From assembly GCA_900088475.1 (NCBI GenBank), contig FLMG01000797.1, positions 1-33,890 on the forward strand: a DNA stretch of 33,890 nt. Direction: 5' to 3'. Every line of letters begins with the position of its first letter. The first letter of the stretch is position 1. The translations under genes were made by a program, and so were the position numbers. The notes below the pieces were generated by a model. The model saw only the letters and a list, made by a program, of their open reading frames with translations, was not told the DNA's origin and searched no databases. Shown piece by piece: positions 3,301 through 31,000 of the stretch. Origin of the DNA: Hyphochytrium catenoides (lineage: Eukaryota; Protista; Hyphochytriomycota).

Positions 3301-6300
3301 AGCATGTAGCTCCTCTTCCTTGCCGGTGGCAGCAGCAGCCGTTGCCTTCGTACTCTGCAGCTCAGCTGTAGTCTCAGCAAGCTGTTGCTGCAGGGCTTTG
3401 TATCGCACGATTAGCTCTTTCAATTTGCCCTAAGCAAAGAAGTTAAAGTAAGTCATCCGCCTAGTCTTTATGCCTACAAACTGGGACGCCGAAGAGCTCC
3501 TTACGGTGAGTTCATCCTTGTCGCCTTTCGACTTGGCTTCTTGCTCCCTAAGCTGTTTCTGGCTTGCCTCTAATGCTGACTCTAATTCTTCACGCTTCTG
3601 TTGGTGCTGAGAAAAGGAAGGAAGGAAACAGACATCATCAATGCTGCTCAGCACCTGTCCGCGCCTTGCATTTCTCAAACTCTCTGTGCCTACCGCTCTC
3701 TCTAGGTTCTGCTTCTCTTCTTGAATGGCTTTCAGCGTCTCTTGCATGGAGCTAGATCCTGGACGATCACCCGCGATGCAATAGTTAGCAAGCGGAAGAG
3801 CTTACCACCCCCGGAAAAGCCAGGAAGGACACGACGCCCAGACCTGATGCAGCTTGAAGTCTTTCTGTGTCCAGCTGCTCCTTAACCCTTTGAAGCTCAT
3901 CATCTGCAGTCTGGAGTTGTCTCTTTAGGAGCTCTGTCTCCTCTGCAGCCTGCTTTAGTCGTGTGGTAGCCTGCTCTTTCATATGCTGAAACTGTTGAGC
4001 TGCACGCTGGAGCTCGTCCTCTGCTTCAGTCACCTGCGAGTCCATGCCGACGATGACCTTAATAAGCGATACCAGCACAGAGAGCAAGACCTTTGTCGAG
4101 ATACAACAGGTGCAGGCACCTAGGCCTAGGACCAAAGCTTCGGATCAGTCAAGAGTAGATCGGGTGTACCTTCGTCTTCAATTGCTCATTCTCCGCCATG
4201 GCCTTTTGAGATGCAATCTGCAGTTGCTGGTGCTAGTAAGGCATACAGGGAGCACAGAAGAGCCTTAGACTAATGGTGATCGGTGAAGATTCTAGCAAGA
4301 GTGACGACCCAAGGATGAAGCTTACCTCTTGCTCTATCTTCCTCACTCGGGTGTTAGCAGAGTTTGCTTCCGCGATGGCTCTCTGCAATTCCTCTTTCAG
4401 CGATTGTGAATCAGCTTCAGCCTGAGGAGGCGCTTTATTCCCAAGCAAGAGCCAGAGGAAAAGGCTATACTTCGCCAGTTACCTTAGACACAGCCTCTTG
4501 CCTCAAGACCAAGGACCGCTCGACTTCCTGTTTCAATTCGATGACCTGCGTGGAGACCGAGCGATATCCGCAATCCACGATACAGGTGCGCGACAGGTGA
4601 GAAAAGAACCACAGACCAACAAGGAGAAAAATAGCAGAAGCAGCAGCAACACCACTCCACCTCGTTCTTTTTGGCGGCTAACTCCTGGGTCAGTCTGGCC
4701 GCATCACCTCCAGCTGCCTCAGAAGCTGCTAAACGGTTTTCCAGTGCCTCGCCCTGGATAAACCCAGAGCAATCAATGGGGAATATGCAGAGGTGTCAGC
4801 AAAAGGAGGCAGTGGTAATGCTAGACATTTCAAAGACTGACCCTCTTTAGGGCATTTTCAAGGTCCTCTTGCAGACGGAGGAGAGACTGCTGGTCTTGCC
4901 GCATCTGAGTCATGATGAATGAGCCAACGCACATATCACAGTCCCATAACAACAACTTGACTAACCTGCTCTTTTTGCTCTTCAGCCTCAGACGATAGCC
5001 GGTCCACCTGAAGTTGTAGGGCATGCTTTGTTGCTTCTACCTCCTCCACGGCCTTCATGGCTTCTGCCTCCTTCCGCCTCACCTGAGAATAACGATTTAG
5101 AAGCTCTAAGACCAGCATGTCGTGGGGACGATACAGAGCATCATCATAGGCAGGCCGTGCCTGTTCCCGCTAGGGGCAAGAGTATCAAAAATAAATAAAT
5201 AAAGTGCGCTGACCTCCTCTCTTAGACTATCTGACTCTGCTTTATGTGTAGATACATCGTCCTGGAGTTCTTTTAGTGTATGTTGGAACCTCTGCGACTC
5301 TGATTGCCACGTCAATGACTTCTTCTGATGATCCGCCGTTGCGCTTGCAAGCTTCTGCTCAAGCTCCTCTACCTAAAAGGTCAAAGTAGAAGGCCGCAGA
5401 AGGTCGGAAGCCAGCGGGTTAGCCTAATAGCCAAACGGCAGGATCGTGATAGTTACCAACTGCACTACGCTTCCAGCCGGGTTAAATACCTGTGCTAAGA
5501 GCTTATTAACTTGCATGTCCTTGTCATTGGAGCTAGAGCTGAGCGCTTTCTTGGCCTCCTCAGCAGCGGCTTCAGCGTTCTTGACTTGTAAGCTCAAAGC
5601 CTCTATCTGTGCCGCTGCTTCTCCCAACTAGGGGGAACAAGGGCGGGGGGCAACGACAGTAAGAAAAAGTCACCGCAGGCGTGAGCAAATAAGCGATGAC
5701 GAGACACTCTAGATATAAGAGTACGTTGATGGTGGCTGCCAACCGTAGAGGCTGTGTACCTGCTGGTTCTTCTGCTGCGCAAACAGCTGCGCCTTTTGCT
5801 GCAGATTTCTCAATTGTGTCGTGGCTTCTGTGGCCTCCATCTCCTTAGCATTCAGTCTTTCCCCCGCTTCGGAGAGCTGTGCTTCTAGCTGTTCCTTGGC
5901 AGCGAGTGCGGCCCGCATTTCCACTTCATTTGAGCTTCGTTGTCCCTTCAAGATACTGATATCAGAGGCTGTTGACCGCATTTCTGGCACGACAATTGAG
6001 GTCTACCTCAAGGGCTCTCTCCAAGTTTGCCAATTGTTCGCGCAGGTTGGTGAGTTCGGCATCTCGTTCTTTAACGCTTGTCGTCAAAGCGTCGATCGTT
6101 CTGGAGCTTTCTTGCGACAGATTTTGTGCAGCGTCTTCCCGCTGTCGGCAAGCGTTTGAAACACTTAGCAACACATCGGCGGAAGCAATACATTAGCATT
6201 ACCTCGGACTTCAATCTGTCGAGCTCTGCCGCTCGTTCCTCTAAACGGGCTTCTAACTCTGATTGCTTCCGTGCCATGTCCGACCGCCTACTCCCCTCTT

Positions 6301-11581: not shown

Positions 11582-13028
11582 ATGGAGGACAGCATGAAAG
11601 ACCGTCAGCGTGATCGTAGCCGGCTCTTTGCCAGGCCAGACGGGAAGAGCGAAGCAACTACTTATCCAAGAAATGTTGGAGCCCAGGCACAGGCCCAACC
11701 CCAGGACCGATTTTATGAGGACCTCAATCAGCAAAACTTATCTCTTCTTACAGAGACAAAGTCTATTGGAGGTGCCGTCCTCAGCTCCCTGGACCGTCAG
11801 GGAGGTAAGACGTAGATTAGAAGCAATTTTCTTTGTGACTTAAAGCATGACTGTTCTTCCGCACAGAAAAGCTCAGTCACACAGAGCGTATGCTGCAAGA
11901 AACTCACCATGACGCACTCCACGCGCGGAGGACAGTTCGGTTAGTTGTTCGTTGTATTACATTGAAATCGTTCGGTCAGTAGCTGAGAATGTATGAACTT
12001 CCTTAGGGGAATGACCTGGTCGGGTTGGCTTGCAAACATTGTTTCAAGGAGCCCTTCTACAGGCCTGCCTAGTCCAAGTGCCCCAGTCAGCACTAGATCT
12101 CTTTTGAACCATGCTAACTCCAGGACTACTGAGAACGGGAACGGTGTGGCCGCCATGGGAACTCCGACTGCCGAGTCTGTGGCATCCCGGGTATTTTCCG
12201 CAATGAAGTGTCAGCTGTTGTCCTTGACACTCACTAGTGCTATGGTAGACATCGACGAAGGCAGACACGGACTTGGCTGCCATCGAAAGTGATCTTAATG
12301 AGCTTGAGGCAATGGGAAAGGATATTGGATTTGCCCTTCACAGCCAATCTAAGCAGGTCGACTCTATCGCAGACAAAGCTGAAACAGTTGAAGATGTCAC
12401 GCGTGAAGTGAATAGACGCGCCGCCAACATCATGAACACAGTCACCAGGCAGAGGCCAATCTTCGTCAAGTTCGTAGCTCTTCAGGACAGCAAGAGTGGG
12501 AGGTTTTTACAGGCAGACATGGCATCTAATGACCTTATCTTAGGGTAGGAGCATCCTGTACACATACTAGTTGTCGCCTCCACACTCATGCGGTTCTGGT
12601 TGCAGACCAACATCCATGACTGAGGACTGCCAGTTTGGTGTCTACACCTTAGGTGAATCAAGCGAGATAATAGGCCTCCAGAGCGTGAAGACCGGGCTTT
12701 GGGTCGGCCAAAGTCGGCGAGGTTTTCTCAAGGTATAAAACTTCTGATAACGGGTTGTATGAACGTTACGAGCTGATGATTGATGCAGGCTCAGGCTAGA
12801 GCTATGAAGTCATGGGAGCATCTTTCTTTTAACATCCACCTGCCAGAGGCGAAGCTCCTCTTCTGTAGTGCCTTTTTCGGCAGGGGCGGTTGGTTAGCAG
12901 CGGATGAACGGTGCAATCTTCGTCTCCTACCTGCTTACGACTCTGACAGCAAGAGTCTGGCACTCAGCTTCATTATGATAGACCTTGTAAAGGTGAAAAG
13001 AGGAAATAGTCGTGATAGATTGAAGTAG
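11582..13028 (+). CDS. SNAP-25-like Qbc-SNARE with a C-terminal beta-trefoil (fascin-like) extension
   Basis: Spliced Qb motif LLTETKSIGGAVLSSLDRQG|EKLSHTERMLQETHHDALHARRTVR|GM and Qc motif DTDLAAIESDLNELEAMGKDIGFALHSQSKQVDSIADKAETVEDVTREVNRRAANIM both carry the zero-layer Gln. No transmembrane helix. About 140 further residues form three internal pseudo-repeats. The exact C-terminus is uncertain (possible extra intron at 12992-13058). Confidence 0.85.
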
Positions 13029-14131
13029 AGATACCCAAAGTATCGCTGTCTCTTCTAGGGGGAAAGCCAGCTGGCAGCCTCCTTGTCGTTGTTTCCTCTC
13101 GCCCAGCGAGCCCGTGTCCTCGTCAGGAGTTATTTTGCTTTTGCGAAGCCCTGCGGCTACTATATGAACAAGGCGGAGCCCACAGCTCCATTATTTATCT
13201 GTACAATATTAAGGCTACCTTAGCTAACGAAGTCCATTAGAGCTTCAATTGAGTCCGTATTTTCTCTGCTTCCTTTTCATGAGAGCACATACGCTACCCT
13301 CCTTGTGACCCTAGTGTTACCCTGGGTCGCTCAAGAACTTCGGCATGTAATACGCTGCCACGCATGGCCTCAACTTTAGAATGGCCCTACTTTGTAGTCC
13401 TGAAGGGTTCTTGACACTCCTTCGACAACCGACAGGATTCATTTCTGGCTGGATTCTACGACTCTTGAGAGCCCAACGTCATGATGTTTCGGAACCAAAG
13501 AGACTACCTTTTTCCACTCATTATAGCGCATGCCATATATGGACTACCAGGCAAATCATCATCCTTCTAAGCGCTAGTCGGCTAAAGCTAGACTTTCGCT
13601 GTGCTGGGTCTTAAGCTTCGATGAGGCGTGAGGCTGCGCGCTCGCTGAAGGCGATGCGGCTGCCGCACAAGGCTCATGATGGGCGCCACATAACTCAAAA
13701 GAGATGATGGGAGGGAATGCCCGGGGGAGGTCTGGATAGGCTGGGTGGGCATGGCGTCTATCCCTAGGTCTACTTTAGTGAGAAGTGGGTGGTGCTCCTC
13801 GGTCGTTACATTGTATTCGCCATCAAAAACGGCGTGGAACTCCTCTCTCTGCACTGTTGCCACTTCACAGTCATTATATTCCAAGGCTTTGCCTGCCAGA
13901 CCGGTCACGAGCCAAGCTCAATAACGAAAGGTCTTGGCTGCGCTACTGGCGGCACTTTCTGCGCTAAGATCAGCGTGGTTCAGGTGCCACTGCTCGTAAG
14001 GTTTCGAGTCTCTGAGGGTAGAGAAGTGCGGGAGTAGTGACCGTCTTCATTTTTCAAGTCTCGTTAATTGAGTTGGGCTGCCCACAGCCTCTGGATCCTG
14101 GGAAGAGTCCCCTTCGTGGAGAACGAGAACA

Positions 14132-16344
14132 ATGTTCTTGAATGATGATACGATCGATGATAACAAGGACTCTAAAGGAGAGGTTAGGCGCCCCTCTCGC
14201 CCCCCGTCATCAGGCAGTACTAGGATGTCCATCCCAGGTGCGCCAGTTGGTGACGACGATGACTCCGGCCTTGGAAGTGCTGGTGCTCTGTCATCTTCTG
14301 CTGCCCGCTCTCGGGTTTTGCAGCAGCAGAAGGAGCTGCAGATGAAAAAAATGCAAACTCGCATGGGTTCAGGTACGCGCAATTTTGCAGGGTCTGTGGG
14401 GCTCTCAGTCAAGAGATAACACCACCCGTTGCTGTTAGGGTTGCTGACTTCCACAACCGAGAAGACAGAGAGTAGCATTACCTCATCCAGCCGCCAACTT
14501 TCGAAGCCCAAAGATGTTGAGGATGATGATGAGGTGTCTTCCCCATCTTCTCGAAGAAGATCATCTGTAGAACGTGAGGAGCGCAGTAGCAGAAGAAAGT
14601 CCTTGCGTGACTCCGACGAGAATGGGTCCGATGACGATAACCGGCGGCCTTCATCGAGAAGGTCAAGAAGAGAACGCCGCAGAGACGATGATGACGACGA
14701 GCACGACGATCGACGCGGCAGCCGCCGGGACCGTGGCCGAGAGAAAGATGTTAGCGATGAAGAAAGGCCAAGGACGGCAAATCGGCGAAGAGAGTCAGAG
14801 AGGGATCGCGACGGAGAAAGAGACAGGGATCGCGAGAAGGATCGTGGGCGCGACCGGGACCGTGATCGCGACGCCAGAGACGATAAAGAGAGGTCAGATA
14901 GGCCACGCGATCGCCGTGAAAGCCGCCGTTCTCGCAAGGATGACCGCTCAGAAGATGAAGATCGAGACAGAGGCAGTTCTGAGGATGACCGGCCAAGAGA
15001 GAGGGAGCGGACTCGAGAAAGAAGGTCCAGCTCCGCTAGGAGGCGAAGAAATACTGAGTCTAGCGAGGAGGAAGAAGAGTATCAGGTTTCTTCTCGAAAG
15101 GTAAGAAGCTGCTATCTCGTTCCATCTAGGAAGTAGGCTTATCCATCTTCCTGCCAGAGTGAGCGTAAGAAATCGATCGACGACAACACTTCCAACGCAG
15201 ACCAAGACGAGACAAGAGCAGTTTCTCCACTCAAAAGCCCAGAAAAGGAAGGAGCTGAAAAAGCCGCCATTCCACCGACCGTGAAAGTACAGCTCGATCT
15301 GTCTGACATCAGGCAATTCATGATGAGGTAGGCATCAATGGCTTGTATGACCTAGGCCGCAAGATCCCATAGACGATAAACTCTGCCAGGCCGACGCCCA
15401 AGGAGTATGGTTGCGTACAGTGCACCATTATAAGGCAGCGAGGAAGTGGGCTAGACAAGCCTTATCCTGAGTACTTCCTTCACCTCAGGGTAAGCACGCC
15501 TTTTCCTTCACCATAGTTTCCGCAGCTAAGCGGGTCGTCGCCTATCAATAGGAAGGAGACAAGTTTTTGGCTTGTAGCAAGAAGAGGCCCAAGAACAAGA
15601 CGAGCAACTATCTGATCTCTCTGCAGAAGGGAGACTACAACCGGACCGGTCTGAACTGTCTGGGAAAGCTCAGAAGCAACTTTATTGGGACTGAGTTCGG
15701 GATCTTCGACAAAGGCGTCAACCCCAAGGATCTGGAGGATGAGAACCAGACCGTGAGCGAACTAGCCATTCGCCAGGAACTGGGTGTGGTCACATACGTA
15801 AGCCTACTGACTTCTTACAGTGCAAGGAGGCATCCGCGATGTTAACACCTCTGATTCTCCCCCACCCTAGGAGCAAAATCTATTGGGCAAGCGTGGACCA
15901 CGAAAGATGCGTGTAGCTGTTCCCAAGGTGCGGGACGACAATACTCGCATTATCTTCCGCCCTCGGACTAAGGAGGAGGAGATAATGACGAAGCTTAAGG
16001 ACCAAGATCATACCAACCTTGTGTTCCTGGTCAACAAGCCCCCTAAGTGGAATGATCAGGTGAAGTCTTAACCAGCTTGACGCAGTTACTGCCCTGTCCG
16101 TGCGTCCTAACATGTTAACTTCGCTTAGGTTGGCGCCTACGTCCTAAACTTTAATGGCCGTGTGACAATGGCTTCCGTCAAGAACTTTCAGCTGGTGACG
16201 CCGGACAATTTGGATCGCATTGTCCTTCAGTTCGGCCGCGTAGGACAGGATCAGTTCACAATGGACTACCAATGGCCACTCTCACCCTTTCAGGCGTTTG
16301 CTATTGCGCTTAGCAGCTTTGACTCAAAGATTGCGTGTGACTAG
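14132..16344 (+). CDS. Tubby/TULP-family protein with long Arg/Asp/Glu/Ser-rich linker
   Basis: C-terminal Tubby domain motifs: [116 protein letters not shown]-stop. All introns are GT-AG and phase-compatible. Confidence 0.95.
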
Positions 16345-17127: not shown

Positions 17128-20100
17128 ATGCCAAGCAGCAAAGTCTCCTTCGATCCACAGCTGTCGGCCTCGCCCCTGCTGCCATCACACGTCTCCCCCG
17201 TCCTTCGCAAGCGCTGGTGGGCACGTTACCTGTCAGCCTTCCGGACGCTGCAGGCTTGTGGCCTCATAGTCCCGCGTATTTATCTCTGTGCAGGTGCTAG
17301 GACAGATCTCTTTCTGATTTGTGGTGTAAGTTAGCTAGCTCTCATTCTTCTTCTGCAGCTCAAGCACTATAAGACAGCTCGCCAGTTGTATCTACCATGG
17401 GGGAGCATTTGACGCAAAGACAAAGCTTCTTACATTAGAAGGTTGGCACCATGCCTTCCCCGCCATCAGGTTACCATCTTCAATGGCCCTTGCCTAGTGA
17501 GTGGACTAACAGGCTGGTATTGGAACAGAGTCCTCAAGCTCGTCAGGGCCTGGAGATAAGAGGCCCAAGCGAGCAGCGACTCAGAGGAAAGAAAGCAAGC
17601 CTACTTCTCGTGCTGGGTCTGCCACTCGGAGAGACATCAGAGATGGAGTGACGGGTAGCCCATCGTGCTGCTTTCAACGATAACTACTTGCCAATCTGAC
17701 GTTTTCTGCCTCCCCTAGACTCACTAATGAGCAAAGACGGTGAGAACCAAGTAATGTCTGATGCTCATGAGGAGGATAACTCTACGGAGAGCTCCGATGA
17801 TGATGGTCCGCATACTACGGACTACCCATATCGACCTCCGCGCGTGGATCCTGAACTCTATCAGGTTGCAGTGCTTGATGATGTCATTGCCGCCAAGCCG
17901 TCCAATGGCAGACTTTCAGGTATGGGTTTCTCCATGGAACTGACGATGTTGCCTCTCTGAGCGCGTAACTGCTTTCTCTCTCTAAAGCCCGCCTATCAAT
18001 CGAGTCAGATGTGCGAGGGAACCAGATGTCCATTCACGATGGGCGCATCTGGTCTCCAGACTTTGAGGACATGTCATCGGATGCAGGTGCGAGGCCTGCT
18101 TTGCCCTGCCAAGGAAGTTTTCTGCTAACGAGTCTTTTCTTGACATATCGAAGTGGACCATTTTATAGAGTTTGCTCGGAGCTTGACCCGAGAGATGCCA
18201 CCAGCCTTTGTAACTGGCCAGAGCATTACCCTTGATGCAGAGGTGGGCAAGCTAGCAGAGGAAGATCTTGAACTAGCGGAAGGTAGCTCCAAGCAGAGGC
18301 CAATGGCATCAGACGAGCTCGTACTTCGCTTTCTTCATCAGCAGAAGATGCAGGAAGCAAGGGCACAGTTTCTGTTGCAGGCAGCACATGGAGTTGGCAA
18401 AGGTCCTTAAAATAGTGCCAAAGCATCACTGCGCGTGCTGCTGCTCACCGAATCCTTTCTGCCCTTCCTCCCATATAGAGTTTGCCTGGTTCCAGGCAAC
18501 GGAAGAGAGCTCAAAGTCGAATTCATCCAGGCTTTCTTGGCTGCAGGGTGCGACAAATGGCTACCGGATTGTACCAGGAGGCGCCTCTCCGACGCACTTC
18601 CGCAGTGGCAGTGCCCAGGAGGTATTTGACAAGTTCAAGGAGACAAGCAACGATACTTCGGCAACCGCTTCAAGAGGTGGAAGAGATAGGGATCGGTGAG
18701 TTCTATCTAACCCCGTCTATCCCTAGCAAGCCGGACTAATCAGCCATAGTGCGAGCCGATCTGAACTTCAAGGCCGCTGGAAGAGCTGGCAAGCTGAAGT
18801 GAAGAAGTCTTTAGCAAGTAACAAGACGCCGAACGGTCCGCAGATATCCTTCCAACAGCTCCTACAGCTAGAAACTGAAGCCCAAGCTCTCCCCCCTCCT
18901 GATGAAGCTCCTGGAGGTTTGTGGCTGCGCTCTCATTTCTATAAGGTTGTTCTCCATCAGTTTACGATGTCCTTATGACGCAGAGCGCTTCCTGGAGCAG
19001 CTGAAGAGCACGTATGACGCACTTTTACAACGACTGCGGTCCGTGTATAGCTGGATTGCTAGGGCGACGGATATCCTAGCTGGCACCATCTCCAATTCCG
19101 ACGTGGTTACTCTTGAACAGTTGCTGAACTCTGCCAACTCCTTTTCTCTCTCAGTGCCGTCTGTCGAGATCGTCCGACAACTGGTCGCGGACATAAGAGA
19201 GTGGCAGGCAAGGTCTAGGACAGCACTGGGCCAGCTTTCGTCCTTGGGAACGCTGCTTACTCTTCTGCGACAAGCTGACGAAAACCGATGGACTCTGTTA
19301 GAACGTGATCAATTGCAGAAGAAGATTGAAGGTAACAGGACTTATGTACTTCGCTTACCCTGGGAGACCCCTGCCTCTTCGTCAACTTAGTGCTTCGAGA
19401 AGCCCATTCACAAGCGGCCTGTACCGTAGTATTTCCTCCACCGCCATCAGTCACTGGGATCTGACTCTGATTTTCTTAGTCGCCCAGCAGTTCGTTGCTG
19501 CCGTGAATGAAGCATTTCTTAGGAGAAACAGGCGAAAGGTGAAAATCCCACTGATACAGGTCCGTGTTGTCGGCGAGGCATTTTTCGCGGTATATCTCAC
19601 TACTTACCTCCTATCTTCGCTTTCTGATCCACATTCGCTCTCCCAATTCCTGGCCTTATTTATCTACTTTCGTATAGCTGAAAGAGTTGCTGGGCAAGAT
19701 AGACGTAGCCGAAGTGGACTTTGAGGAGGCAAAAATCTTGCGCGCACATATCTATGATGCAGAAGAGTGGGTGCGAAGAGCACGAGATGCTACCTCAAAG
19801 CGTGCTGACATGAAAACGCTCATGGCGATGCTTAATGAGGCAGAGACTATTCCAGTCGACCTATCTGAGGAGGTGATGAGGATCCAAGATGAACTGAAGA
19901 AAGCCCGAGACTGGGTTAACAAAGTCCGGAAGATGGTTCCAAAACAGGCGAAGACACGCCGGACGGCGCCAATGGAAAAGGTTTGTACCTACTCGCCCTT
20001 ATAGTCGTTACCTGGAGCTAAGTCAACGTGGATGTTCCTAGTTGGAACTGAGCACCATGAGGGACCTTCTAAGTGAGGCTGAATCTATGGCGGTGGACGT

Positions 20101-23100
20101 AAGAGAGCTTGAAGAGATGACTGATGTAAGAAATAGCCTACCCAGTATCTGCAACAGTCTGCATCATCCAGCAAACTCCGTTCTTCTCAGGCTTTTATGC
20201 TTTAGTCGTTCAGACTTTTTTGTATGCCTCTGTCTACCTTTCTGTCTGCTTTGCGCGAAACCCCTCTTGACAGGATTCTCTTAGGTGGTAGAGAGCGCAG
20301 AGGATTGGCTGACAAGGGTGAGAGAAGCACTGCAGTCCGGGACTGACTTCACTGTCAAGTCGCTCCAAGAATTATTGTTAGAATGTGAAGATATCCCAGT
20401 GGAAATGGAAGAGCAGCAAGTTTTGGTGGTGGAAGTTGAGGGACGGATCTGGTCTGATCGAGCAAGAAAAGCTCTCACTGCGCCATATACAGACCTTGAG
20501 AACCTTAAAGTTCTCCTGTCTGAGGTAAAGCTCTTCGTCGCTTCCCTCCCTTCCCCTTGATACCTTCTAAGTTTTTATGTGGATCAGAGTGCGGAGCTAC
20601 GCAACAGGCTACCCGCGCCTTACCAAGCGTCATGGGAACTTGGTGCGGAGGCTGAAGTAAGACAGGCAGTTGAGGGCGCGGAGAAGTGGCTGCATGACAT
20701 CAAACAAGCGCTTGGTAACCAGTGGCTCGCTGCTATTGGGTCGAATGCGGCTGGCACTCCGGTACCCAGCTCGCGGAGGGGAGGTTCCAGCACAAGGACC
20801 ACGATTGATGATGTGGCTGAGCTCCTTAAGACGGCAGAGCAGCTTCCTGTCAAGCTTTCTGCGCAAATTGAGGCTGTGCATCGGACGTTAGATCAGGCGA
20901 CCCAGCTGCGCTCACGGGTGGTGCAGCTTTTAGCTGATATTGACGGTGTTATTGCCAGGAAGGCAGACACCGCAGTCCCTGAGCCACGTGCAATATATCT
21001 AAGTGAACTGTCAACGCTTGCATCTGAATATGAAGCTTTGCCATTAGCCTTTCCGGAAGCTGAAACGTTACAGGTGCAGAATTTAAGTTATGGAATGTTG
21101 AAGCCATCTCGCACTGACATTCTGTGTGTGAGCAGACTTTTCTCACCACATGCGAGAAGTGGCTTGACAAGGCGAGAGCGATAGGGCCCAAGCGCCACTC
21201 GAGAGGCAAAGTTAGAGAGTCAACCAAAAAGGTTAGTACTTATAGATCAGGAGCGGATGTTTGTTGAGCGTGACGACCAGTTCTAATTCTATCTTCCGCG
21301 AAGGTCACTCTTGAGGAAGTCGAAGGCCTTATAGAGGCTGCTCGAGGGTTGCCAATAGTAGTAGAAGAGGATATTAATCATCTTCAGGCAGAGGTAGAAC
21401 GCGCAGGCAGTTGGCAGGCCAAGGCCGAAGTGGTGATTACGCAGGTTTCGGAGGATCTGCTAAAAATGAAGGAACTTGCTCTGAGGCTGGCCTCTCTGGA
21501 GGAGAAAGCATATGGGGAGTACGCAGAAAGAAGAGTCCAGAAGTGCCTACACCGGCGGGAGAGACTTCAAGAAGGCTCTGCCTCGGCGGCAGTCGCTGCC
21601 GAAACGGGCCCTCTTTCCATCTGGACACCCGCGGTGATTAGCGAGGGCTCAGACCCTTCAGCTGTCCAGGACGCCAGTGACTCCAAAAAGCAAGCTGCAT
21701 TTAACAACTGTGCCATTGTTGCCGAGATACTCGAGCGCTTCCCTCCAGTAAAGTCTGTGAAGAAGAGCGTAAGGGAGTACGCAAAGTTCAATTTCCACCT
21801 GCAGGAAGAAGACGTATATTTGGGAGTTGACGAGGACGACGATGAGAAAGAGGAAAGGAAGGAGGAGTCTGATCTGTTAGACCCTCTTTATGAGGAGCAA
21901 TGCCAATCATTCACTTCTATCGCTAGCACAGCGACAGAGAAGCTGAAGAGTCTGTCCGACGAATCCAAACTTCTTGGCATAACTACAGGGAAGGAGAAGG
22001 CAGTGGAACATCTAAAAGCGTCCCTTGACTGGACAGTCCGCGCCCGTGAGGTCCTGACGGGCTCTAAGCTTTCGAATCCGTCCGAACTACGAGGTTTGAT
22101 TTCTGAAGGCGAGAAGCTGTTGAGGAGTGCTACCAAGTCGTCAGAAAGCAGTGCGGAGAGTCACAACGTCCACCTTGAGGCCGAAGCCGAAGCGAATAGC
22201 GACGGCAGCAAGGACGCTGTTAGGCGAACTTTAGAGGACTCACTAGTGGATATAGCTCCGCTCAGGTGAGAAACAGCAGTTATCTTCGATGCAGGGGTTC
22301 TTTCTCACAATAAATCAGACAGAAAGCCTGGAACTACTTACAGTCAACAGTTTATCTAACGCTAATGCCCTTCTCAATAGGAAAGAATATGAGAAGGTTC
22401 AGCACTGGGTTTCCAGGGCCAAATCTGCACTAGAGACCGGGGCGTGCGAACTCTATGAAGTCTTGGATCTCATCGATGAAAGCGAGGAGCTTGCTGTAGA
22501 GGTTGAAGAGGCACGAAAACTGCAGAATGAAGTTAGGAAAGCAAAGTCCTGGCTCAGAAAGACTAGCAAAATGGTGGATAGCGCAGCCAAGGAAGGGACA
22601 CGCTTCACCAAGAAGTCTTTGACACAGCTAGTAAATGAGGCGGATAAGATCAAGGTTCTGCAACAGCTCCATGTTACTTTATTTGATCGAAGTTCCCCTC
22701 CTTGCTATCTATTGCCGTCCGAGCCTGACGCTGACCTTCATGGATTGCAGGACTCGCCAATACTAAAACACTGTTCTTGCCACAGATAAAGCTAAAGAGG
22801 GTAGAACGCTTCCGAGGAGCTCTGTCGGCAGGTCGAAACTGGCTGAAACGTGTAGAAGAGACAGGCATTGAGACTGGGGAGGCCAGCGTGGAAGCCTTAC
22901 AAAACCTGCTCCGGGAGTACTATCGAGGAGAGGTCATCATCGACTTGCAAGAGAATGTCGAGGTATCGATTCTTTGGTTGTTCGCCAGTACTGCAGGTCC
23001 AAATGAGATATTGATAGATCATCACTTCTCCCTCTTCATGCGCCGCCGTGAACTTGGGCCTTTCTTCTAGGTGCTGGAGCAGGCCGTCACCCCTTACTGC

Positions 23101-24538
23101 CTCTGTAGGCAGCCCTATGACGGCTTCATGATTGGGTGCGATAATTGTGATGACTGGTTTCATGGGGCTTGCGTCAATTTGACTGAGGCCCAAGCGGATA
23201 AATGTGACCAATGGTCCTGTCCTCGGTGTTCCATAGCCAAGCACTTGGCGCATGTCATCGAGCTCGGAACGACAGCGATTAACCGTTGTCTAAGCCCAAA
23301 TGTTGTCCAGACTGTGGCACAAAAAGCTAAACAGCGGGCGCAGAAACTGGTAGGCACTCCCATTCTTCGAACTCGCCCGGCTACGGCTTATTTGCCTTTC
23401 TGTTACTTTTTAGGTAAAGCGAGAACAAAAGGAGCTACAGAGGCTCCAAGCCTCCTTCGCAGAGCAAGAGGCTCACTTCCGGGCACTGAAGCAGCACGAG
23501 CAGCAAGAAACCGGAGAAGCGGCGCCTCCCAACTTCTTTCCCACGCAAATTAGCGCAACGAACCCAGCTCTCAAAACGGCGCCAAGTACTGACCCAGATT
23601 CCGGAGCGGGTCCGACCTTCCAGACCCCCGTGACGGTGGAAGACGCTGCAAGAGCCTGGCGGGCCGTAGAAGAGACTCAACAGAAACTGCAATCTTTCTT
23701 TCATAAAGCCGAAACTCTTGGTCTTCGTTTCCAGCCAGATGGCACCGTTAATGGTGCAGAGTACGCGCAGCGTTATGCGAAAGAAGCAGAGCTCTGCTAT
23801 GGAGAACTCCATCCCTTCATCGTTGACTGGATGACCTCCTGCCAAGCAATTCTTAGCCCTCCAGGGCACTTTTTAAAAGCAGCGTGTCCCAAGGGAGACT
23901 CCGCCATTCCGCCCAGCTACCAGGCCCTTCTGGATTACGCTGAGCGGCACGCTATTCACCAAGTTGATGACGTTGTAGTCGTATCTACCTGCCTCACATG
24001 TCTTGTATGGGGCGCTTGGGCTTTGCGACTGCTCTCGTGTCGGTCGGAGGAGACGGAGGTAGCAAGGCTGGTAGAGAAGGCAGCACCATACCGATGGAAA
24101 GAAGAGAAGGTGATTCGTAGTCTCAAGTACATGCTTTCTAGAGCAGGGAGCTGGAATGGCAAAGTGGAAAAGCTTCTAGTGGGCCTTGACACGTCACAAA
24201 CTTTGAAGCCCGGGGCCAAAGGCAAGCTCAAGGCCATGCTTTCCGAGGCCAAGCGAATTCCGTTGGTGTGTCGGTTGGAACGATTGGTGGAGGATCTCGT
24301 GTCTCCGGGCAAGAGAAAGCGTTCACCATCCCCGGAAGTAGGACCGCCACTCAAGCAGCATCGAGGTACAAGCCCAACTGAGCCGTCTAGGTCCATCGGC
24401 GCCAGTATCAACTCTGAGATGGAGACAGCTTCAATAGTTGGTACGTGTGATCTGGAAGATAGCCTCTCTAGCTCGCTGGAGCAATATTCGCCAATTACCA
24501 ACCCCCCTTCTCCTCGCCAGCATATCCGAAAATGGTAA
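17128..24538 (+). CDS. Large chromatin protein: ELM2-like domain + PLU-1-like helical repeats + PHD finger (KDM5/JARID1 C-terminal-like, no JmjC)
   Basis: Continuous spliced frame from at least 17378 to TAA 24536-24538; start at 17128 is tentative. PHD: [45 protein letters not shown] (about 23095-23230). Many repeats of the type A(E/D)xWxxxAxxxL...LxxLLxExxxIPV, typical of the KDM5 PLU-1 region. N-terminal [10 protein letters not shown]...IWSP...VDHFIEFA...ELVLRFLHQ resembles ELM2. Confidence 0.85.
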
Positions 24539-24897: not shown

Positions 24898-27200
24898 TCA
24901 AGAATAAAGAAAGGTTGCTGCCACCGGAAGTAGCATTCCGGGAAGCAGGTGCATCGCAGCCACAATCACAGCTGTGGGAAGTCACAGAATAAAGCCTTAG
25001 TGGCACGGCGTTTTCTCTTATGATGTGAACACAATGTCTTGATGAGCTTACCGGAAAGTCCGCTAAGATGGCTCGCTGCTGACTTCCTTTGTCTGAGTGC
25101 AAAATTGTCATCGCACGACCGGGATGGAGCGTCTTTGCAGGGGCTCTGGCACGCTGCGCTAATTTCTTCGCTGTCAGTCGCCTTCGGAATAAGCCCAGCA
25201 CGAACACCACCGAGGTAGCTCCACCGGGGATCTTCGTTCTCCGTTTTGAAGTTCCAGAAGAACCAACCATCCGCTCTTGAATAGGCGTTCATCATTCGCA
25301 GATACAGCTGGTAGATCAGCTCCTTGGGTGCCTCGGCGGTGATGGGACATAGACAATCCGTTGTGGGACCGTAGCCATTTGTCTCAAGGTCTCCTCTGCT
25401 TTTGTTGGGAAATCGTGGGATGCAAGGAGTGCAAGAACGCGCTCCACAAAGGTCATACTTTCCATCAGTCATTGTAACTGCCAAATGGAACTAGGTCAAG
25501 TTTGATATCGAGGTGGTTACAGCTAAGATGACAAAGCTAAGTTACCTGGCCGAGGGTAGTTCCACCCATTTAGCCAGAGTGTGCAGGGATCCGTTGCTGA
25601 GGACCTGTCGGAATCGTTAACGATTAGCTCCGACGGAGACATGCATCAATAGGCCATGCATACCACTCTGCCACCACAATCCGCAACCCTTGACGCCTCG
25701 CGTTTGCATAGGCATCGCCCTTCGCGCATACATCCGAAAACAACTGCTTTGCGGTACGCGGGGCTGCCCAAGCCTCATAAGGATGAGTATCAATGGCAGT
25801 CAATCGTCTGGGAGTAGGCAGCCCTTTCGGCCCCACCCACTCACTCAAGCTCCTAAAGCTGTCGCCATATATTCGTATCCAGTGCGGCGCAATCTCCGCT
25901 ATCTTTTTATCAACAGCCCGATACCAAGTCTTCAAAGGTTCCAGGGGCGTCGTGCCAGCGGGCTCATTAAGAACATCCAATATGCCAACCACGGTGGGGT
26001 TCCCTAAGGCCCGCTAATGAGTCGCTCACACGTATTAAAACAGGGATAAGGGAATCAAGCCTTCAACCCTTACATGAGAATGTATGCGTTATAATCTCCA
26101 CGATCTGCAAGGTAAAGTTGAGGTTTTCATAACTGATGTTGGGGTTCAAGGTGTACACAGGTTCAAAGGCTGAGGCAGCGATAGTCTCTCCTTTTACTCT
26201 CTTAGCGTTGTCCTCAAACATCCAAGCCGGATCAAAGGTGCGCACATACTCTCCTCTTCCTGCTTACACCATGATAAGGTCAGCACGTAGGGCTTACTGC
26301 GACTGACAATGTTAACTCACCTGTCCAAAAGATCTGTCGAGCTTTCCCTCCATTATCAAAGCCATTCTGGCCTCCGATGGCTGCATGCAGGTCTAACGCC
26401 CCGATGTCGTTAACTTTGCCTCTCTGGTGGTAGGGGATAAAGGAGAATGATGCCCTTACCAATGAAAACCTTGACATTGTGCTTGCCACACCAATCGATG
26501 ATTCGGTTCACATAGAAGCTACTGTTCTTCCAGCACCCGTTTGTGTAAGGGGGATACTCAATGTACACCCAATCCGCCACAGGGAGCCTCACAGCGTTGA
26601 TCCCATAGCTGGCCAGCTCCTTTATCTCCTCTTCGGTCACGAAGGTGTCCCAATGGCGTTGGAGTTGTTTGTTCGCTTCCTCGCCGCCCAACACCTTGTA
26701 CGGCGATGAAGCTAATCAGTGATGGGTTACATTGGAGCGGGAGGGTGAGTGTGAGAAGTGTTTACCTCGCAAAAGCGGAAGCAATCGATAGCTGTTTTGC
26801 TGATGGGCTTGTTCTGGAACTTTAGAGAGTTATGTGAGGGCGCATGCAACTACTATGGAGCTCCACCTTGTACAACGACGGGTGCTACCTGGTAAAACAG
26901 GGACGGTGTTATCCAGGGTTCAATAACGAAGATTCCACCAAGATTAACGCCCCGGAACTTCCAACGGTCAGAGATGTCGTCGTCGTCAACTCCCTCGATC
27001 GAAAGTTGGGAGGTGGTGGCTGTGCGATGCATTATCTTCTGTTGAAGTGCATCTTCAGATACTCCTTCTACCCACAGCTGACTTTTCAGGTCTGAAGTGA
27101 CCGCTTGGAAGTCTCTCCTATGTGCTAAAGTGCTTTCGACTGTAGCTACCAGCGCGAAAAGGTGAAGAAAGCCCATGACAAAGGGCTTGTAGCCAGCCAT
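24898..27200 (-). CDS. Secreted GH5 exo-beta-1,3-glucanase (EXG-like), probably GPI-anchored
   Basis: Signal-peptide-like MGFLHLFALVATVESTLA. Motifs RGVNLGGIFVIEPWITPSLF, HWDTFVTE, INAVRLPV, DLHAAIGGQNGFDNGG, catalytic NEP (acid/base) and AEW (nucleophile), GWFFWNFKTE. Terminal intron 25051-24972 yields a hydrophobic tail ending at TGA 24900-24898. Start could be 27263, 27200 or 27176. Confidence 0.92.
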
Positions 27201-28073
27201 CTTCAGCTGAATACTTCGTAGTGCTTTTCTCCGTGTCTTCGCTCTTGGCTTTATCTCTCCCATCGTTGAGCGCGAACGCCCCTATTCGTACCCCTACTAG
27301 GTCCAACCGGGACCGCTATACCTTTTCAAGGATCATGGGTCGCTAACTTGAACATCAGGCAACCTTTGCAGACCCTGGTTTCCTTGGTACTCTCTGCTCG
27401 GCACAGAAGAAGAGCCTCGCTCATTAACCTACAAGCAAACGCCACCGAACTCTTCACATGCATGTAGGAGCTCTGTAGCTCTTGAAAGATCTGCCGACCA
27501 AGAGGCCCTCACATCGCTCATGATGGCGAGATGATGAGGATCTGATGACTGTCAGAACAGATCAGAAGCACAGAGGCAGGAGGAGTGAGTGCCTTGAAGG
27601 GGGTCCTCCCGTCACAACCCTCGTTTCAAAGCGATAACTAGTCTGTGCTACCGTATTTGATCTTTGCAACTTTGATCCTTCCTATGTCCTTTCTATGATG
27701 TACAGGTACGAGGTCTTGATCTCGATCTGTGGAGTTCTGATGCTGATGTGATGGATGAAGATGATGGATGACAGGAAGGAGAGCAGACCAGAGATCCGGC
27801 TGCGGGCATGCTTAAATGAGGAATGAGAGCAAGCAGGGCGCTCCTCCAACTGTGTATCCGTAACGCTTGGAGAAAGAACGGTGATTGTCAAGCACGCAGC
27901 TCGGTGAAACGCTATGTGAAGGGGAAAAAGTTGGCATGTAGTTGACAGCATATCACCGCCACTAGATAGGTGACTTCGGGGGGACTACTATCACCTCTGA
28001 CTAGCATTGTGCGTTGCCATTCAAAGCCTTTTTGCTCCCGCCAGGCATGAGCATATAGCTTCCGACAATAGCT

Positions 28074-31000
28074 ATGAATGGCGTTTTGTTTGCAGCAAGA
28101 GGACGCTTTCGGCAACTCTCCAATGGTGGCTGCCACGCAGTATGTCCCCTTTTCTCAAGAAGAACCTGGTCTAAGGGCCAGGGCTGGAGTAGAGCAGGTC
28201 TAAAGCCCAGACGTTTTGTGGAAGGACCATCCATGTCGCATCTATCTCCGTTAGAGCGAGTGCGGGAGCCCATGGCACCCTCTTTTGATCCCATAGCGGT
28301 AGAGAGAGGATGGGACCAACTGTGGGCCAAGAATATCCCCAAAGCCTCACCCACTAGGGCCACTTCTAGCGAGGAAGTCTTCTCTATGGTCTTGCCACCT
28401 CCTAACATTACAGGAGCTTTGCATCTTGGACACGCGCTTACCGTGACCATCCAGGATGCGCTCGTCCGTTGGCAACGAATGATGGGGAAGAAAGTGTTAT
28501 GGGTCCCAGGAATAGACCATGCTGGTATTGCCTCTCAGGTGGGTGCAGCGTCCTACGCTCAAGACGCCAGGAGTGCAAGCTTAACAAGTTGCATCTGCAG
28601 ACAGTAGTGGAGAAGAAACTATGGCGAGAAAAGAAGCTCCGGAGGCAAAGTATGACTCGGCAAGAGTTTTTGGAAGAAATGTGGGACTGGGTAGCGGCTT
28701 ATCGGCCCACCATTGCCAAACAGCTGCACAGGCTGGGGACATCCATGAACTGGGAAAAAGAAGTGTTTACTCTGGATGAGAAGAGGTGAGATACGCCTTT
28801 CTCTACCTTCCGAGAGTCACAGAGCTGATTGTTGCTGCCGCAGATCTGCTGCAGTGACTGATGCGTTTGTCCGCCTCCATGACAAGGGACTAGTATACAG
28901 AGACAAAAGAATGGTCAACTGGTAGGTTACCTTGGATTTTCGTTCCCAGTCAGTCACCATACAGGTTCTAAAAGAAGGCTTTAGGTGTCCGGCACTTCAG
29001 ACGGCGATATCTGACATCGAAGTAGACTTAGAGGAGGTCTCAGGGCCCAAAAAGGTATAACTATATGGGCGTCAGAGCACATGCTCTTTAACTGACACCA
29101 ATTGATCCAGCTAAAAGTGCCTGGTAAAGACGGAGATCGGCTTGTAGAATTTGGCGTCCTTCACCGCTTTATATACCCGGTAATTCCACGATGAAGAGCG
29201 CCTCATTATTACCCGAGGCTCAACATGGTGGACTGTAGGTGGAAGGCGGGGGTGAGATTGAAGTTAGCACGACGAGGCCAGAGACAATGCTTGGTGATAC
29301 TGCCATTGCCATACATCCAGACGACCCACATCACAAGCACCTCCATGGCAGATTTGTCATTCATCCCTTTGATGGTAGTGTGTCTTTATCTGATGAACTT
29401 TCTATATTTGGGACTCAACCCCCGTCATAGGTCGACGAATCCCAATAATCTGCGACGAGACGTTAGTTGATCCCTCCATGGGCACAGGTAAGAGGAAAAG
29501 ACTTTGCCTTGCATTGCTCAGTGCTCACCATGCTTTAGGTGCGGTGAAAATCACCCCTTGCCACGATCCAAATGACTGGCAATGCGCTAAACGCCACAAT
29601 CTTCCGCAGATAGAAGTCATAGATAAACTGGTCAGTGAGACTGAACACTAGTTGAGTGCATTTGCTGTTTCATATAACTCTTTATCCGACACTAAGTAGG
29701 GCTACATGACACCGGCTGCTGGAGAACCCTTTGCCGGCCAGGATCGTTTCGACTGCCGAGAAGAGGTGCTTCGTCGTCTAGAATCACTCTCACTTTACCG
29801 TGGGAAGGTATCCGATTACATGGGGCTCCTCTTAGCTGCTAGACCTGACTTCCAACGTTTCCAGGACCCTCATCGAACCTCTATCCCACGATGCTCCCGA
29901 TCAGGGGACATCTTGGAGCCTATGCTCGTTCCTCAATGGTTCGTGAACTGCAAGGTTATGGCTGAGCGTTCAGCAGCGGCAGTTCGTCAAGGAGACCTTA
30001 CAATCACGCCAAGCTTTTACACCGTATGCTCGATCTCGCCTTCTTTAGATGTCCAACCGCTGACCTAGGCCCGACATATCAGGATACATGGTTCCAGTGG
30101 CTGGATAACATTCAAGATTGGTGTGTTAGTCGTCAACTGTGGTGGGGACATCGCATCCCTGCCTATCGCGTGAGGCCGAATAGTTCTGGTAAACGCCAAA
30201 AGGAGAAAGCGGATGGCGATGGGTGTTTCCTCAAAAGAGCTTGGCTAACGCTATCTGACTAGATACTTCAATCAGCTCGGAGCATTGGGTCATCGCCAAA
30301 ACAGAGGAAGAGGCGCGAAGGAAAGCTCGAGAGTTGCTGGCTTCAGATGACTTCAGCCTTTGCCAGGATGAGGATGTACTGGACACTTGGTTCAGTTCAG
30401 GATTGTTTCCTATGGCAGCCCTGGTAATGACCATGCACGCTTGCCCTTAAAGAGGCTTTGTATGATGTTAACAGCTCCTGTTCTAGGGCTGGCCAGAAAA
30501 TGTAGAAAATGATACCGTTCACTTGCCATTCGATATGAGGGGTTCTTATCCCCTCTCCGTGATGGAGACGGGGGCTGATATCCTCTTCTTTTGGGTGGCG
30601 AGGATGACCATGCTATGCTCAGAGGTAACCGTTTAGCTGCAATCGCACTACGTCTATAAGGTAGTTCCTAATAGGAACGACGTACCATTCAGCTGTCAGG
30701 CGAGCTCCCTTTCCGGAAGGTCGTGCTTCATCCGATGGTCCGAGATAAGAGTGGGCGGAAGATGAGTAAGAGCCTTGGGAATGTCATCGATCCTTTAGAT
30801 ATAATGGATGGAATTGACCTGGAGCACATGATTGACAAGATAAAGGTACGACAGATAACAGTGGTAGTTCCTGGCCTAGCTACTGACCGCCTTGTGTTCG
30901 TTAGGAAAGCAATTTGGATTCGAAAGAGATCGAGGTATCGATCAAGCAGCGCAAACGCGACTTTCCTAAAGGCATCCAGCCGTGTGGAACTGACGCTCTG

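Follow-up and report, generated by a model that had tools for sequence, protein, structure and literature searches.

A gene for a predicted Qbc-SNARE with a C-terminal fascin-like beta-trefoil in Hyphochytrium catenoides, and its relatives in diatoms and Phytophthora

The window, by which we mean the whole stretch of DNA analysed, covers positions 1 to 33,890 of contig FLMG01000797.1 of Hyphochytrium catenoides (33,890 nucleotides). Its plus strand carries, at 11582-13028, a gene whose predicted product joins the two SNARE motifs of a SNAP-25-type protein (Qb and Qc) to a C-terminal beta-trefoil. Six exons and five introns, read directly from the genomic sequence, make up the gene, and its features are as follows.

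11582-13028, plus strand: whole gene, coding for a predicted 380-residue product with Qb, linker, Qc, beta-trefoil and basic tail (stop-free exon pieces; family order over exons 3 to 6)
11582-11804, plus strand: exon 1, the N-terminus and the first half of Qb, reaching the zero layer (LDRQG) (sequence reading)
11867-11939, plus strand: exon 2, the second half of Qb (sequence reading)
12007-12190, plus strand: exon 3, the end of Qb, the Trp-rich motif and a variable linker (family profile match at 11999-12127, E 1.6e-5)
12011-12043, plus strand: motif MTWSGWLANIV, beginning at Qb layer +8 (family alignment)
12249-12544, plus strand: exon 4, the end of the linker, the complete Qc motif, the connector and the first trefoil strands
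12261-12434, plus strand: Qc SNARE motif, exon-4 residues 5-62, with the zero-layer Gln in HSQSKQVDSI (phmmer against the PDB)
12435-12458, plus strand: connector of 8 residues, NTVTRQRP, from the Qc helix to the first trefoil strand
12459-12986, plus strand: predicted fascin-like beta-trefoil of about 135 residues, in pieces 12459-12544, 12606-12732 and 12789-12986 (family hidden Markov model (HMM) and own-genome profile)
12606-12732, plus strand: exon 5, the end of trefoil repeat 1 and the start of repeat 2 (family and own-genome profile matches)
12789-13028, plus strand: exon 6, the remainder of repeat 2, repeat 3, the basic C-terminal tail (12987-13025) and the stop (family and own-genome profile matches)

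The summed exons amount to 1143 nt, i.e. 380 codons plus a TAG stop at 13026-13028, and every exon piece, once trimmed to whole codons, translates stop-free. All five introns (62, 67, 58, 61 and 56 nt) run from GT to AG, and none has a length divisible by three. Codons are split at three junctions (GAA, CGG and GGA). Were intron 4 retained, the exon-4 frame would meet a TAG at 12546. The exon 1/2 junction reads G|E-KL, equivalent to the consensus QGEQL of a family of database homologues described below, and the exon 2/3 junction (V-R-G-M-T-W-S-G-W) agrees with the near-invariant family motif LRGMTWSGW. Members of this family match exons 3, 4, 5 and 6 in unchanged order. Introns 4 and 5, as predicted here, are exactly the two junctions that the first-pass annotation of this DNA had named (12545-12605 and 12733-12788), and the three pseudo-repeats it had quoted were all located in exons 4-6. 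A profile search of the contigs of the organism's own genome (assembly of 61 Mb, 4759 contigs) showed the gene to be single-copy; a match of exon 6 on contig C845 was discarded as chance (E 8, four stops). By this reading a stramenopile-like protist carries the gene intact, in six exons and as a single copy, with its exon joins predicted from the genomic letters.

Database searches for this gene used the separate exon pieces as queries. Pfam returned nothing significant on any of the six, SNARE models included. Searched with phmmer against the PDB, residues 4-62 of exon 4 aligned over their full length with the C-terminal motif of SNAP-25 (best match squid 1l4a_D, E 9.5e-4), and more than 15 further SNAP-25 entries matched the same exon. 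The zero-layer Gln of Qc is present, with 'sqskqvdsi' pairing with 'sqnrqvdri' of squid SNAP-25. The Qb motif was read by eye (LDRQGEKL...RGM) and from collinearity with the family; its zero-layer Gln, in the LDRQGEKL that is split between exons 1 and 2, corresponds to that of SNAP-25 LDEQGEQL. SNARE identity was also assessed with a profile built from six full-length homologues and run against the PDB. Its N-terminal part matched Vti1 (Qb, E 5e-5) as well as motif 1 of SNAP-25, and its second part matched syntaxin 8 (Qc), SNAP-29 and motif 2 of SNAP-25; Sec9 was likewise among the matches. In 3j96_M, a single chain with both SNAP-25 motifs, profile positions 13-63 fell on residues 12-62 and positions 148-195 on residues 124-171.

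The usual membrane anchors are missing from this SNARE part. Exons 1-4 encode no Cys, and no transmembrane helix is apparent, the maximum 19-residue Kyte-Doolittle mean across the exons being 1.04. In the wider family a hydropathy above 1.6 was reached by 1/100 members, at that member's N-terminus, and members carry 0-2 Cys within 40 residues after the MTWSGW motif, i.e. not the palmitoylated cluster of SNAP-25 and SNAP-23. The product therefore has Qb followed by Qc in one polypeptide, two zero-layer Gln residues and no transmembrane helix. Because the SNARE matches coincide with the lack of Cys and of any hydrophobic stretch in exons 1-4, we take it, from its sequence, to be a soluble Qbc-SNARE of the SNAP-25 type without a palmitoylation cluster. 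The first-pass annotation had likewise read a Qbc-SNARE of the SNAP-25/Sec9 type with neither Cys cluster nor transmembrane helix, and the exon-4 and six-homologue searches, the Cys count and the hydropathy values all agree with it.

Directly at the end of Qb stands the Trp-rich motif, in which M, T, W, G and N are each conserved at 90% or more across 107 aligned rows. In the predicted structure of the Phytophthora cinnamomi homologue P0100 the corresponding MTWSGWVANMF forms a short helix (residues 71-79). Counted from the zero layer, the tryptophans would fall at the position that the palmitoylated Cys residues occupy in SNAP-25.

Beyond Qc, the chain continues. Layer +8 of Qc lies 28 residues past the zero layer and is followed by about 9 residues before the first predicted strand. 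In all, about 160 residues, including the predicted folded domain, extend past the point near layer +8 at which a SNAP-25-like chain would end. A family domain HMM, built without the rows contributed by the window, was run over the 1403 stop-free pieces of the whole window. Only three of them matched at E < 0.01, in order and contiguous: HMM positions 3-34 on 12249-12545 (E 0.007), 38-75 on 12571-12735 (E 5e-8) and 75-141 on 12780-13025 (E 1e-6). Since so few of the 1403 pieces matched, and these were collinear and contiguous, the resemblance of the C-terminal extension to the family domain exceeds what chance would give, as judged from sequence. The window's trefoil pieces contain 22 K/R against 15 D/E. 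The same architecture appears in the full-length predicted model of P0100 (mean predicted local distance difference test score (pLDDT) 84.6), which runs from a Qb helix (2-68) through the short helix (71-79) and a zinc-finger-like element to a Qc helix (159-219), a trefoil (226-361) and a terminal helix, with the first trefoil strand starting at 226, close behind the Qc end at 219. The order of LRGMTWSGW after Qb, then Qc, a short connector and a C-terminal trefoil is found in the window gene and in the family alike.

It could be argued that the gene model itself is at fault, with the SNARE terminating at the 12546 TAG and exons 5 and 6 being chance open reading frames (ORFs) or part of a separate gene. 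The window's exon joins were indeed read from genomic sequence, and single exon pieces have no Pfam match. Nevertheless, we consider such an artefact scarcely credible, as the three pieces tile the HMM with canonical splice sites between them and the same fusion is seen in unbroken transcript contigs of relatives. Among these, the contigs of P0006 and P0001 (1.3-1.7 kb, transcript-like) each hold a single unbroken ORF spanning Qb, Qc and trefoil, as do ORFs from MMETSP that are marked 'type:complete'. The fusion proposed in the first-pass annotation, with no separation after the Qc helix, is thus borne out in P0006 and P0001, both of which continue through the trefoil.

We further investigated how widely this architecture occurs. 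An exhaustive search of representative sequences with exon 4 returned two proteins of 472 and 440 aa, both members of the family; the match extended past the SNARE motif in each, with more sequence beyond. A word search with exon 6 alone yielded no candidate, the query being short and subject to a length filter. Word searches seeded by the 472-aa protein, and then by the alignment of six homologues, brought the family to at least 127 database proteins, and the domain HMM detected the C-terminal domain in 109 out of 122 fetched sequences, where in nearly every case no more than about 20 residues follow it. The first-pass annotation had proposed that other proteins be searched for the combination of Qb, Qc and trefoil, and this family has that combination. 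Diatom sources include Fistulifera, Seminavis, Epithemia, Pseudo-nitzschia, Leptocylindrus, Stephanopyxis and Asterionellopsis; the others are seven Phytophthora species, marine protists and the MMETSP transcripts. Members from Phytophthora are annotated as 't-SNARE coiled-coil homology domain-containing' or 'conserved C2H2 zinc finger' protein. Identity between the window protein and any member was 21-46% per exon, and on that account there is, by sequence comparison, no close orthologue in the database. Between Phytophthora species the domain is 77-90% identical, compared to 71-84% over the entire protein. Across the family, the trefoil has a mildly basic character (median isoelectric point 8.5).

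The 13 of 122 members without the domain have non-conserved tails. Eleven stop directly after Qc, and two (P0008 and P0120) earlier. The possibility that such members form a canonical, trefoil-less subfamily did not hold for the one case examined, P0106: two pieces immediately downstream encode its trefoil (E 1e-39 and 5e-17), the gene call having been cut at an intron. These pieces lie at about 4004-4270 and 4348-4512 of the P0106 metagenome contig (JGI; L008, 3001-4524). In diatom-type members an intron sits exactly at the SNARE-trefoil boundary; gene callers that run on into this intron yield 'trefoil-less' proteins ending in junk tails. The remaining twelve domain-less members probably share the cause established for P0106.

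The linker between Qb and Qc varies across the family. Some members (Phytophthora, P0001) have a C2H2-type zinc finger there, at residues 124-146 of P0001 and at about 98-125 of P0100; on P0001 the Pfam zf-C2H2 model was sub-threshold (E 0.14). The window linker cannot hold such a finger because it has no Cys. Diatom linkers (e.g. P0007, about residues 118-165) carry a conserved Cys-containing insert, AAQAVQNYHAN..VL..CET.EQ..TC..IC..M, that is absent from the window and from oomycetes. In P0002, the 440-aa protein, the Qc motif is doubled almost verbatim (about residues 197-266 and 267-336), which looks like an assembly or gene-model artefact.

The fold of the extension was modelled on residues 218-373 of P0100, the closest named homologue there, with an alignment of 103 rows that included the window's three pieces. 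The model (mean pLDDT 90.7, predicted template modelling score 0.85) has twelve strands. Foldseek against the PDB returned beta-trefoils only (Symfoil, FGF, FHF, FRG1, HA17 and HA33), with a best E of about 2e-6 and template modelling scores, by target, of 0.7-0.8 to Symfoil and FGF. The top VIA-align match was fascin (3p53_B; Z 17.1, root-mean-square deviation 2.5, 132 residues), which Symfoil, FGF and HA33 trailed by about 1-1.5 Z (Z 15-17). At the sequence level, the Pfam Fascin model (PF06268) matched 50 of the 103 members at E <= 0.01 (best 2.5e-6), compared to 8 for FGF, 2 for MIR and 1 for RicinB; three database members carry a precomputed PF06268 match, and the window's separate exon pieces have no Pfam match. 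The family profile run against the PDB also placed fascin first (E 1e-5), followed by the MIR domains of ryanodine receptors, FGFs and FRG1. Among ESM-Atlas models the nearest were fascin-like/DUF7910 modules of plant GH5 glucanases, trefoil-bearing bacterial GH3 proteins and bacterial fascin/FRG1; none of these nearest models was a SNARE, and an Atlas look-alike search with P0100 gave no usable match. The homologue model and its structural neighbours therefore uphold the fascin-like beta-trefoil proposed in the first-pass annotation. On the strength of the model, the domain may fairly be called a 'fascin-like beta-trefoil', a name meant in the structural sense.

Two of the rival readings turn on what the domain might bind. 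The first, proposed in the first-pass annotation, is that a single fascin-like trefoil binds F-actin and ties a target-membrane SNARE to the cortical cytoskeleton. Fascin is the best match both of the sequence profile and in VIA-align, and a precedent exists in hisactophilin, a single cytosolic trefoil of Dictyostelium that lies at the inner face of the plasma membrane and links actin to it. However, fascin uses clefts between several of its four trefoils, whereas the window protein has a single trefoil; structurally, FGF, Symfoil and HA33 match practically as well as fascin; and the nearest Atlas models sit on glycoside hydrolases rather than on cytoskeletal proteins. We accordingly rate an actin link as improbable. 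The second reading is a sugar-binding lectin module of the ricin-B or HA33 type. Trefoils of HA33, HA17, CBM42 and Mitsuba were among the structural matches, and the same Atlas neighbours sit on glycosidases, but the protein has no signal peptide or transmembrane helix and SNARE motifs act in the cytosol. With RicinB matching 1/103 members and no QxW-type repeats evident in the consensus, a lectin appears very improbable.

The SNARE-trefoil profile had one other match in the H. catenoides genome (E 8e-5 in the genome search), a fascin-like trefoil of the same type on the minus strand at about 2416-4580 of L009 (region 69000-78999 of G000:C1619). Its pieces at 4346-4580 and 3920-4174 matched the SNARE-trefoil HMM with E 5e-9 and 0.0025, and it shares an SVKTG..(L/V)GQ stretch with the SNARE-trefoil. 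Downstream on the same strand, Pfam recognised positions 11-58 and 110-152 of VASt (E 0.007 and 5e-5). The two together are probably one gene, predicted from sequence, in which a trefoil lies N-terminal to a sterol-transfer domain. In familiar VASt proteins this N-terminal side is occupied by the lipid-sensing GRAM domain. The C1619 trefoil thus adjoins a domain of the sterol-transfer type, whereas that of the window is joined to SNARE motifs.

Once a SNARE complex has assembled, Qb and Qc both have their C-terminal ends directed at the membrane. In this family both of these membrane-facing helix ends would bear conserved elements that are not part of the helical bundle, namely MTWSGW after Qb and the trefoil after Qc. 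The trefoil would sit where single Qc-SNAREs have their transmembrane helix, and MTWSGW where SNAP-25 has its palmitoylated cysteines. As the membrane-facing ends carry these conserved extras and the usual anchors are missing, our best reading of the trefoil, which we hold to be about an even bet, is that of a membrane-proximal attachment module that replaces a lipid or transmembrane anchor. It could hold the Qc end at the target membrane through lipid head groups or a protein of the cortex, with the Trp motif adding interfacial insertion. The short connector, the mildly basic trefoil, the conservation of the domain in Phytophthora and the presence of a trefoil beside VASt exons are all consistent with an anchor.

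Several observations weigh against such an anchor. What the family conserves are Gly, aromatic and aliphatic residues of the core, and its alignment revealed no conserved basic or ligand-type patch common to the window, Phytophthora and diatoms. Basic residues that are conserved among diatoms (WKRQG, GRREEWE) have not been kept in the window or in Phytophthora, and hence a common lipid-binding signature is lacking. Fusion could even be hindered by a globular domain of 15 kDa sitting at the zippering end. The fold rests on a homologue that is 21-40% identical to the window's exon pieces, together with profile collinearity, and the role proposed here, like the exon joins of the window gene, is a prediction.

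Some of the same evidence would suit a regulatory or partner-selecting cap, in which the trefoil binds an SM protein, a tether, a calcium sensor or an R-SNARE, or folds onto the C-terminal layers, and so gates the last step of zippering. The very short connector would put the domain at layers +7/+8, where zippering is completed, the family shares no basic patch of the lipid-binding type, and the domain co-occurs with the invariant MTWSGW, a possible docking partner. The candidate partner is, however, only hypothetical, and we regard a cap as rather unlikely. Returning to the attachment module, a broader proposal can be made tentatively: stramenopiles may anchor a SNAP-25-type SNARE in a third way, by a trefoil after Qc plus a Trp motif, with fusion competence dependent on a ligand and with the trefoil beside VASt being a reuse of the same module. 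We would not put this beyond a possibility somewhat on the doubtful side.

A Qc helix whose membrane-facing end carries a conserved globular domain departs from the usual picture of what follows a SNARE motif, and prompts the question of how force and position are passed on at the site of fusion. Among the organisms with the family are diatoms, important primary producers of the sea, and Phytophthora, where secretion underlies plant infection; both groups are genetically tractable, so the role of the trefoil is testable. For users of databases, members may look 'domain-less' where a gene caller stopped at the SNARE-trefoil intron, as P0106 demonstrates.

Elsewhere in the window, overlapping long ORFs of low complexity occupy 14047-15136, rich in Arg/Asp/Glu/Ser on the plus strand (where Pfam found no match) and in Ser/Arg/Leu on the minus strand. 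A same-strand series of long ORFs at 18902-24538 (plus strand), including a PHD finger at 23071-23553 (Pfam PHD, E 8e-10), is probably one large multi-exon gene. Two minus-strand ORFs at 24966-27263 have motifs resembling GH5 exo-1,3-beta-glucanases by eye (FRGVNLGG..., FWNFKTE...), and Pfam gave no match at E <= 0.001 for either piece. At 28074-28607 (plus strand) lies an exon of a class I aminoacyl-tRNA synthetase (Pfam tRNA-synt_1, E 1e-20), of valyl type by eye.

Compared with known systems, the trefoil shares its fold with fascin (PF06268) and FRG1 at an identity of about 13-15%, and fascin consists of four tandem trefoils whereas the window protein has one. Hisactophilin offers a functional analogy only, as no sequence match to it was obtained; it is myristoylated and His-rich, neither of which is seen in the window protein. 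On the SNARE side, SNAP-25, SNAP-23, SNAP33 and Sec9 resemble the window protein in combining Qb and Qc in one chain with two zero-layer Gln residues and no transmembrane helix. SNAP-25 chains, however, end a few residues past Qc layer +8, and the exon-4 alignment reaches their last residues; the window protein adds a predicted beta-trefoil of about 135 aa there, and at the position of the SNAP-25 Cys cluster it would have the Trp-rich MTWSGW instead. SNAP-29 (whose motifs were matched by the family profile), SNAP-47 and Vam7 are closer in being soluble and without a lipid anchor. They are not palmitoylated; Vam7 is recruited by its PX domain and SNAP-47 by a PH-like N-terminal region. The extra domains of Vam7 and SNAP-47 are N-terminal and membrane-distal, whereas the trefoil of the window family is C-terminal and membrane-proximal. 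To our knowledge, the described Qbc-SNAREs (SNAP-25, SNAP-23, SNAP-29, SNAP-47, SNAP33 and Sec9) end at Qc, and we know of nothing after a SNARE motif other than a transmembrane helix, a lipid-modified tail or a few residues, nor did we find anything else. No description of a SNARE followed by a trefoil was found in the literature, which is weak evidence given that most subscription journals lay outside the search. The suggestion in the first-pass annotation of an undescribed system therefore holds to the extent that we found no paper on the architecture, but not as something peculiar to this genome, a large family being already in public databases. What appears to be new is the trefoil directly after the Qc helix; the family proteins themselves are already public, as 'hypothetical' or 't-SNARE coiled-coil homology domain' entries.

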